Part shown: in pieces, positions 40,416-42,483 of the stretch
Layout of the letters: each line of letters opens with the position of its first letter
How positions within the stretch are numbered: position 1 is the stretch's first letter
Assembly (NCBI RefSeq): GCF_947568905.1
Contig: NC_079172.1
Coordinates: 4,526,001 to 4,590,000, forward strand
Source of the DNA: Ostrea edulis
Taxonomy: Eukaryota
Reading direction: 5' to 3'
Length of the DNA: 64,000 nucleotides
Notes under the pieces: generated by a model
The model's database searches: none
What the model saw: only the letters and a program-made list of their open reading frames with translations
What the model was told of the DNA's origin: nothing
Position numbers and translations under genes: made by a program

Positions 40416-40649
40416 GAATGTGCTACAACGTTTGTGTTTGTACCAGAGCACGTGGATACCCGGGTTAGAATGGGTCTTCAGTAACCCTTACCTGTCGCAA
40501 GAAGCGACTAAATGGGGCTGTTCTTCACATAATACCGAAAAATCCGAGGCCACGTATCACAGCAGGTGTGGTACGATAAAGATCCCTCCCTTCTCAAAGG
40601 CAATAAGCGCTGAGCATAGGCCTAAATTTTGCAGCCCTTCACCAGCAAT

Positions 40650-41407
40650 GTTTGACGCTGACTTACGGAGTGTGTGGTCAATCCACCTCCAGCGTCGTCC
40701 TAGAATCTCTTCTTCTTCAGGGAGCTGGTTGGTTCTCTATCACAGGTCTTTGTTGATGATGGTTTTCGGCTAGCGGATTTGGAGCATCCTTCTCAGACAA
40801 GAATTTATAAAGGTCTGGACTTTCTGGACTGTAGCCACTGTTGTCCTCCAGGTTTCAGCCCCGTGTAGAAGAACTGACTTGACGTTTGCGTTGAATAGTC
40901 TGATCTTGGTCTGCAGTGTCAGCTCTTTGGAATTCCATATGTTATTCAGTTGTAGGAATGCTGTTTTGGATTTTAATAATCTAGCTCTCACATCAGCATC
41001 AGTTCCGCCCAGCTTCTCGATGACAGTTCCCAGGTATGTGAAGGATTCCACTTCTTCTAATACCTCATCTTCCAGCTTGATTGGTTCGTTGCTGACGGTG
41101 TTGACTTTGAGAATCTTGGTCTTCCCCTTGTTGATGTTTAGACCTACTTGCGCTGAGGTGGATGCTATGTTGTTGATCTTCTCCTGTGTTTGTTGTCGGG
41201 TATGGGACAGTAGTGCCAGGTCATCTGCGAAGTCAAGGTCATCAAGTTGATTGAAAGGTGTCCACTGGATTTCTGTTGTTATGTTGTCCGTTTACATCTT
41301 CATAATCCAGTCAATAGCCAGCAGGAAGAGAAAAGGGGAGAGCAAGCACCCTTGACGAATTCCGGTTTTCAACTCGAAGGCCTCTGAAGCTGGCCACCAT
41401 GGATTAC
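40650..41407 (-). pseudogene. Degenerate RTE reverse transcriptase fragment (inverted segment)
   Basis: Reads IHGGQL(1 bp frameshift)SEAFELKTGIRQGCLLSPFLFLLAIDWIMKM*TDNITTEIQWTPFNQLDDLDFADDLALLSH...EVESFTYLG...KIRLFNANVKSVLLHGAETW...LRRMLQIR*PKTI...RRWRWIDHTLRKSASN. It contains the QG..LSP and FADD RT motifs and several stops. Confidence 0.93.
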
Positions 41408-41592
41408 AAGCGCTGACCTGGAATCCCCAAGGAAAGAGAAAAAGAGGAAGGCCGAAAAACACATAGCGCCGAGACCTCAATGCCGACACTAAGAAAATGG
41501 GATATACCTGGAGACAGATCGAACAGAAGGCCCAGGATAGAGATGCCTGGAGATCTCTTGTCGGCGGCCTATGCCCCAGGAGGCATAAGTAA
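41406..41592 (+). pseudogene. RTE ORF C-terminal remnant (sense segment)
   Basis: [60 protein letters not shown], the typical RTE-1 C-terminus. Confidence 0.9.
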
Positions 41593-42483
41593 GTCACCGG
41601 CAATTGTGACGTCTCCATGTGAATGAAAAATTCTCTCGACGGGCGTCAAACAATATATAAATCAATCAATCAATACTACAACGTTACCGTTGTGATTCAT
41701 ACGTGTTAAACCTCCAGATATACACAGGAGAATTCCGCTAACAAGCTTAACCACCCACAATATCTAGATCTGTTACTCCTGGCGAAAGATGTAATTTTTC
41801 CTTTAAACATTTTCCCCTCTCAATTTCCCCCTTTATAGATTTTCGAATTAATCCGCCATTTCTTTTGTTTACATTGGGTTATCAAAGCAATAGAGGGCGC
41901 ACCATTCAGATTTGCACAAAGCCACCGTTCCGGAAATGGGTACAATCGAGTCTCTCGAAAATTATCATATCAATTTGTACCAGTGATTGCAAGTCCGAAT
42001 CGCAATATCGAGAAATATCCTCTAGTAGATATAGAGAAGGGACGAGTACGTATCAAACATTCACCAGCTTTATTTCATTGAGTGATGTCTTGAAAACTCG
42101 GGAGGGGGCTGATCAGATGAGTCTAAGGGTCCGTGTTTGGCCTACTTTTCATCTCACCTGTGCCCAAGGCTCAAGTGAGCTTCTCCGATCAAAACTTTCC
42201 GTTGTCTGTAGTTGTTGTAAACTTTTCACATTTTCATCTTCTTCAGAACCACTTGGCCAATTTCAACTAAACTTTCAACATAAATCATCCTTGGGTGAAG
42301 GTAATTCAAGTCTGTTCAAAAGAGGGGTTGTAACACCCTTCTCCGTGGGGAGATGATAGCGAAAACACACTGACAAAATTTAAAAATCTTCTCCAGAACC
42401 AGCAGGCCATTTTTTATCAATCTTGGATTAAGGGAATTCAAGTTTATTCAAATGAGAGATAAAGCCCTTCTCCAAGGGGAGAT

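Follow-up and report, generated by a model that had tools for sequence, protein, structure and literature searches.

Twin priming is the accepted explanation for copies of the L1 retrotransposon that carry an inverted 5' part. The closest described counterparts of the locus reported here are the twin-primed, 5'-inverted L1 copies of mammals (Ostertag and Kazazian 2001, as cited in PMC4245944 and PMC2912911), and the searchable literature treats 5' inversion as essentially an L1 phenomenon. In a cell-culture study, human L1 in human cells was the only source of 5' inversions apart from a single Nimb insert, and 5' inversion was concluded to depend on the LINE species and on the host (PMC4245944). 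The Nimb insert was a single 5' inversion of the zebrafish element Nimb-2_DR, a member of the I group, in chicken DT40 cells (Yamaguchi et al. 2014, PMC4245944). The same source tied 5' inversions to target-site duplications (TSDs) of 10-20 bp and argued that an overhang of 5 nt does not suffice for priming.

LINEs of the RTE clade produce TSDs whose lengths peak at 10-12 bp, a value cited in PMC4245944. Their target signature, as given in the available text of Nishiyama and Ohshima (2018, PMC6007223), is a T at P1 located about 10 nt 3' of a T stretch; that text applies the signature to ordinary insertions and makes no mention of 5' inversions. We found no report of twin priming in an RTE-type element in the searchable literature, the papers inspected being concerned with L1 or merely citing the original description, and an earlier report is possible. 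A first-pass annotation of the locus had likewise suspected that this behavior is not commonly described for RTE elements.

Here we describe a locus in a 64,000-nt stretch of DNA from the oyster Ostrea edulis (the whole stretch analysed, hereafter the window). Its structure is probably, at a likelihood that we put near 0.8 from the sequence, the product of a single retrotransposition of an RTE-clade LINE into a pre-existing SINE through twin priming. A known insertion mechanism seems in this way to extend to a LINE clade and a host for which we found no description of it. The features of the locus, in window coordinates, are as follows.

40451 to 40649, plus strand: left part of the host SINE-like repeat, aligned to 29 other copies at 85-88% identity
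40627 to 40630, plus strand: TTTT run, read from the sequence, 9-12 nt 5' of the first base (T) of the TSD
40639 to 40649, plus strand: left TSD (5' copy), 11 bp, TCACCAGCAAT
40650 to 41405, minus strand: inverted RTE-type segment of 756 nt, C-terminal half of the reverse transcriptase, recognized by translation (motif FELKTGIRQGC... to ...HTLRKSASN)
41406 to 41407, no strand assigned: AC common to both segments at the internal inversion junction, from the family alignment
41406 to 41585, plus strand: sense 3' end of the same RTE-type element, to the end of the open reading frame, from the sequence and the family alignment
41586 to 41593, plus strand: (TAAG)2, microsatellite-like 3' tail containing the stop codon TAA, compared with the tails of other copies
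41594 to 41604, plus strand: right TSD (3' copy), 11 bp, TCACCGGCAAT
41605 to 41677, plus strand: right part of the host SINE-like repeat, with (CAAT)n at its end; alignments reach about 41671-41679

The TSD surrounds a composite insert of 955 bp. Translated on the minus strand, the inverted segment runs from ...FELKTGIRQGCLLSPFLF... via FADDLALL to ...WRWIDHTLRKSASN and contains 4 stop codons. Its element-3'-most base (minus strand ...GTCAAAC, at 40650) abuts the 5' TSD. The sense segment as a whole (41406-41593, 188 nt) begins with (A)CAAGCG, where (A)CAAGCGCTGACC encodes QALTWNPQG, and closes with CATAAGTAAG; this piece, with a tail typical of the family, adjoins the 3' TSD. Other family copies end in CATAAGTAAG or (TAAG)2-3, and none has poly(A). 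The TSD copies are identical at 10 of 11 positions, and the sole mismatch, a change of CpG to CA in the left copy, is ordinary CpG decay. This composite of TSD, inverted piece, sense piece, taagtaag tail and second TSD inside a SINE-like repeat had been recognized in the first-pass annotation, and all of its coordinates and sequence statements hold.

As far as the available descriptions of twin-primed mammalian L1 go, the layout of the oyster insert is identical to theirs, i.e., TSD, inverted 5' piece, sense 3' piece with tail, and TSD. It is also like them in the small loss at the inversion point, the short overlaps at the junctions and a TSD of at least 10 bp, and its 11-bp TSD falls within the 10-20 bp range said to allow 5' inversion (PMC4245944). 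Unlike mammalian L1, the oyster element has a (TAAG)n tail and no poly(A), its reverse transcriptase is remote from that of L1, and its host is a bivalve. A separate feature of the sense piece is a 9-nt deletion (window 41575-41586). In most family copies, these 9 nt (GGTAGCAGG) separate ...CCAGGAGG from the CATAAGTAAG tail; the deletion sits between two AGG repeats.

Without the insert, the host repeat (about 40451 to 41677) would measure approximately 270 nt, and a first-look search returned 5638 candidates for it in the genome, i.e., thousands. In 29 uninterrupted copies, ...CCCTTCACCGGCA[A/G]T runs directly into GGTGACGTCTCC, such that the 11-mer is present once; with longer left context, these copies read ...GCAGCCCTTCACCGGCA[A/G]T, then GGTGACGTCTCC. 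Because the 11-mer is single in 29 intact repeats, its two copies around the insert represent a true 11-bp TSD and not a chance match. The empty site is thereby evidenced at the level of the repeat family. No tRNA-like head was detected in the host repeat by ARAGORN, and an Rfam scan of 40000-42200, host-repeat head included, gave no match. Since the head is recognized by neither tool, the term SINE is used here as a description based on size, copy number and tail. The neighboring DNA contains a 27-nt minisatellite (unit approximately CACATTACTGACGTCACATCTACACAC) in two arrays, at window positions 39500-39680 (6.7 copies) and 40012-40414 (about 15 copies), the second of which stops approximately 35 nt before the host SINE.

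The breakpoints were placed by comparison with other copies of the LINE family. Across the breakpoints, the family reads ...GTCAAAC AT[T/C]ACAAG ACAAGCGCTGACC..., or, in a wider reading of the same site, ...CCGTAAGCCAGCGTCAAAC AT[T/C]ACAAG ACAAGCGCTGACCTGG..., and in 15 colinear family copies the gap between the window's two pieces in the source element is 8 nt. The first-pass annotation had estimated that about the codons I-T-R are missing at the inversion; the 8 nt correspond to I-T-R minus one base. The minus strand of the window at the left junction is ...GTCAAAC ATT GCTGGTGA, and the nearest relatives of the insert (L002, L003 and L004, 89-90% identical) read ATTACAAG at the breakpoint site, which bears out the earlier suggestion that AAC ATT at this junction is plausible LINE sequence. 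The last three bases of the TSD, AAT, can thus equally be read as the element's ATT, giving an overlap of 3 nt, or of 2 nt against the ATC subfamily. The other five of the 8 nt, ACAAG, are one unit of a tandem ACAAG-ACAAG. Since ATT is assignable to the TSD and the ACAAG repeat is ambiguous, the actual loss lies anywhere in the range 0-8 nt.

At the internal junction, the family has ...CAGAGT followed by AGTCCATGG, versus GT followed by AATCCATGG in the window (sense orientation). The AC at 41406-41407 can be assigned to either piece, a 2-nt overlap; alignment of the family with the window agrees on this point with the microhomology noted previously. Each overlap of 2-3 nt would be expected by chance in about 1 of 16-64 cases and is individually weak.

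Several other sequence features were seen around these sites. In another copy, L009, a direct duplication of about 49 nt (approximately 1443-1501, minus strand) spans exactly the breakpoint site ...GTCAAAC ATCACAAG ACAAGCG.... The sequence GCGTCAAACA, next to the internal priming site, has a perfect 10-mer counterpart in the SINE (40649-40658 versus 41643-41652), 39 nt 3' of the target, and an inverted match of 13 of 15 positions (40652-40666 versus 41589-41603) resembles the tail-plus-TSD junction. Both inverted matches could be coincidence or could aid docking of the RNA, and we leave them unexplained; by a rough estimate, chance alone would produce approximately 2-3 such perfect 10-mers over the scanned 2.3 kb.

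The same junctions bear on the idea that a normal RTE insert, 5'-truncated to about 950 bp, was altered later. In this reading two breaks, one within the element and the other at its 5' end, would have flipped its 5' 756 bp, and end joining would have cost a few bases. Such an event would automatically leave the pieces adjacent in element coordinates, and short overlaps of the kind found here (AC, AT/ATT) are likewise typical of end joining. It would, however, need a left break that fell by chance within 0-3 nt of the border between element and TSD. The left border of the inversion coincides with the TSD edge within the 3-nt overlap, and no inverted SINE sequence was found, the flanking SINE being in its normal orientation. 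In addition, inverted repeats that would pair 40650 with 41405, the two ends of the flipped piece, are absent, and a repeat-mediated inversion was rejected on this ground. An inversion bounded by repeats or extending beyond the TSD, which the first-pass annotation had named as signs of a later rearrangement, is therefore not what the locus contains. Later inversion would also have to account for four events in about 60 kb of family sequence (the other copies are described below), an implausible density, with one break in every case on the side of the element's 5' end. We consider a later inversion unlikely.

Twin priming of one RNA predicts, by contrast with independent insertions, that both pieces have one source. 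Divergence was counted column by column with the commonest base of the family as the reference, in place of a built consensus sequence. Differences number 56 in the 752 positions of the inverted piece (7.4%) and 11 in the 178 positions of the sense piece (6.2%; Fisher p = 0.63). At its non-majority bases, the inverted piece, which is 90% identical to L002, agrees most often with L002 (18/56) and L004 (17/53), then with L014 and L003; L002 (4 of 9 sites covered) and L004 (3 of 8) are also the top sharers for the sense piece. Both pieces share age and subfamily, with the limited power that a short sense piece affords. The possibility of an origin from different subfamilies, raised in the first-pass annotation, was thus examined directly, and the same relatives (L002 and L004) were found to share variants in both pieces.

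These data are difficult to reconcile with two independent insertions, in which a 188-bp RTE insert would have been followed by a separate, inverted RTE fragment at its 5' junction. Nothing beyond the presence of two pieces speaks for this sequence of events. Target-primed insertion always delivers a 3' end with its tail, and the inverted piece has neither; it stops within 8 nt of where the other piece starts, in an element of more than 3 kb; a single TSD encloses both pieces; they are equal in age and belong to the same subfamily; and copies of the family are few, about 70-120 in 895 Mb. The two-insertion reading is effectively refuted.

The identity of the element was examined at the protein and target-site levels. 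Stop-free pieces match Pfam RVT_1 and DUF6451, pointing to a non-LTR (LINE) reverse transcriptase, and the best solved relatives, all remote, are the reverse transcriptases of R2 and L1 ORF2p (E of about 1e-7 over approximately 90 residues for L1 ORF2p). The nearest proteins, 57-73% identical and with the same RVT_1 and DUF6451 layout, are from Schistosoma species and gastropods and carry no clade names. The 3' UTR is very short, the stop codon lying within (TAAG)2, and the tail is microsatellite-like without poly(A). In three other 5'-truncated family copies, the TSD measures about 8-15 bp as judged by eye. Searches of Pfam and PDB with decayed sequence from further upstream in longer copies recovered no significant match to an endonuclease domain; one of these upstream pieces, in L019, shows a GDFN-type motif.

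With regard to the RTE integration signature, as represented in the available text of PMC6007223, the insert is alike in that its TSD starts with T (40639) and TTTT lies 9-12 nt upstream, which is one instance and weak. It also agrees with that description in having a microsatellite-like tail, and the next base of the tail repeat, T, equals the first base of the TSD. The 11-bp TSD falls inside the 10-12 bp range that PMC4245944 cites for RTE elements. Assignment of the element to the RTE clade is well supported by these sequence characters, i.e., the tail, an open reading frame that runs into it, the TSD length, the target signature and the homologues. A 340-residue stop-free stretch in L003 (1366-2385) shows the 57-73% identity to many proteins of Schistosoma, Batillaria, Littorina and Elysia, and similarity of this type across phyla features in discussions of RTE elements moving by horizontal transfer.

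The genome (895 Mb, 52 contigs) was searched with each piece; the inverted piece gave 123 first-look candidates, 40 of which were scored, and the sense piece gave 74. We fetched 29 related loci of the family and merged the hits of four genome searches into element coordinates. Pieces on both strands were present in 3 of 50 clusters holding the C-terminal half of the reverse transcriptase or the tail, namely the window and loci on C3 and C6. According to coordinates only, the C3 locus (C3:49823941-49825838) has about 830 nt inverted, after which the direct piece begins within 3 nt, with approximately 29 nt of the element missing; the C6 locus (C6:36229735-36230424), also by coordinates only, has 112 nt inverted, then a direct piece, with 365 nt missing. 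One more copy, L029 (chromosome piece C4, minus strand), contains an inverted stretch and then a direct stretch to the tail, and lacks 43 nt of the element. Its junction carries 11 nt of filler, and its candidate TSD is possibly CTTTCCT versus CTTTTTTCCT, overlapping the element's AGGAAAG. Base-by-base reading covered the window and L029.

Inverted-then-direct copies, L029 included, amount to 4 of about 50 located copies (95% interval 2-19%), those on C3 and C6 being recognized by coordinates alone. The corresponding share of 5'-inverted L1 copies in the human genome is larger than this 2-19% of located copies in the oyster family. All four have the order predicted by twin priming, with the inverted piece upstream of the direct piece and breakpoint b before c. 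Because 70-120 copies are spread over 895 Mb, chance juxtaposition of independent copies is negligible. The outcome of twin priming seems to recur in this RTE-type family at a rate of a few percent, the copy in the window being joined by one further example at minimum and perhaps by three. That twin priming is a regular outcome for the RTE clade in bivalves, at several percent of insertions, is a broader proposition, to which we give even odds.

Rearrangements of other kinds were also encountered in the family. A 92-nt unit occurs twice in tandem inside the RTE copy L002 (920-1104), and a 44-nt unit is repeated in tandem about four times inside L027 (961-1125). A 230-nt insert in the 5' region of L011 (278-508) matches, in reverse, L015 43-305, upstream of another copy, and is probably another interspersed repeat. 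At G000:C4:13672026-13677961, one copy has about 4.9 kb between its reverse-transcriptase part and its tail, with both on the same strand, which suggests a later insertion into the copy.

The recurrence also bears on whether the structure in the window was created by the assembly, through a mis-joined or mis-oriented stretch in a repeat-rich region. The surroundings are indeed rich in minisatellite, SINE and LINE sequence. A mis-join would not, however, be expected to end exactly at a TSD and at the neighboring base of the element, nor to reappear with an equivalent structure at three further loci, located on other chromosomes, and the sequence read (40200-42100) contains no Ns or breaks. Nothing resembling human DNA was encountered. 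An exact-protein look-up of the two junction-spanning open reading frames, as a route to an independent assembly, returned no record. Given a structure that is exact to the base and its recurrence elsewhere, misassembly is unlikely.

A different route coupled to retrotransposition, in which a second RNA of the same subfamily was primed or the reverse transcriptase switched templates, has a similarly low probability in our estimation. One RNA and two identical RNAs cannot be separated by sequence, and U6 chimeras document template switching by RTE-type elements (PMC4476161). A second RNA gives no reason, however, for breakpoints that lie 0-8 nt apart, whereas a first cDNA that meets a primer annealed to the same RNA does, and near-adjacency is also seen in L029 and in the C3 copy.

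The first-pass annotation had interpreted the locus as a product of twin priming, and every sequence-level feature that can be tested supports that interpretation. The architecture, with adjacent pieces of common origin, overlaps at both junctions and a single TSD, could have arisen in the following steps; it is from this architecture that we infer both their order and second-nick priming. The endonuclease would first nick the bottom strand at the left edge of TCACCGGCAAT, and the resulting 3' end would prime cDNA synthesis on the (TAAG)n tail; first priming on the RNA tail is suggested by the sense 3' end adjoining the right TSD. The top strand would then be cut 11 nt downstream, and the freed ...GCAAT-3' end would pair, AAT to AUU, within the same RNA. 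From this top-strand primer, a second cDNA would run 756 nt toward the 5' end of the RNA; the 3'-most base of the inverted piece abutting the left TSD points to such a second priming. The first cDNA would halt just short of the annealed second primer, leaving 0-8 nt missing, and the two cDNA ends would be joined via the 2-nt overlap AC. Afterwards the copy decayed, diverging by about 7%, gaining stop codons and undergoing a single CpG change in its TSD.

Among the systems described previously, Nimb-2_DR is like the oyster element in being a non-L1 LINE with TSDs of about 12 bp and a 5' inversion, and it supports priming by 3' overhangs of at least 10 nt. It differs in that the Nimb-2_DR inversion belongs to another clade and arose de novo, once, in a cell assay, whereas the oyster inversions are old genomic copies of RTE type, with at least one and perhaps three more besides the window. 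Genome annotation can easily mistake a twin-primed copy for two separate fragments, with the result that copies are overcounted and single events go unseen. A clean RTE-type case provides a data point for the view that the length of the overhang (TSD), not L1-specific biology, governs whether second-nick priming can occur. By implication of the overhang-length model of Yamaguchi et al. (2014), inversion would follow wherever the 3' overhang is about 10 nt or more. If twin priming is a regular outcome for RTE elements, 5' inversion would not be a peculiarity of L1 and human cells, and would be expected wherever a LINE leaves a 3' overhang of at least approximately 10 nt.
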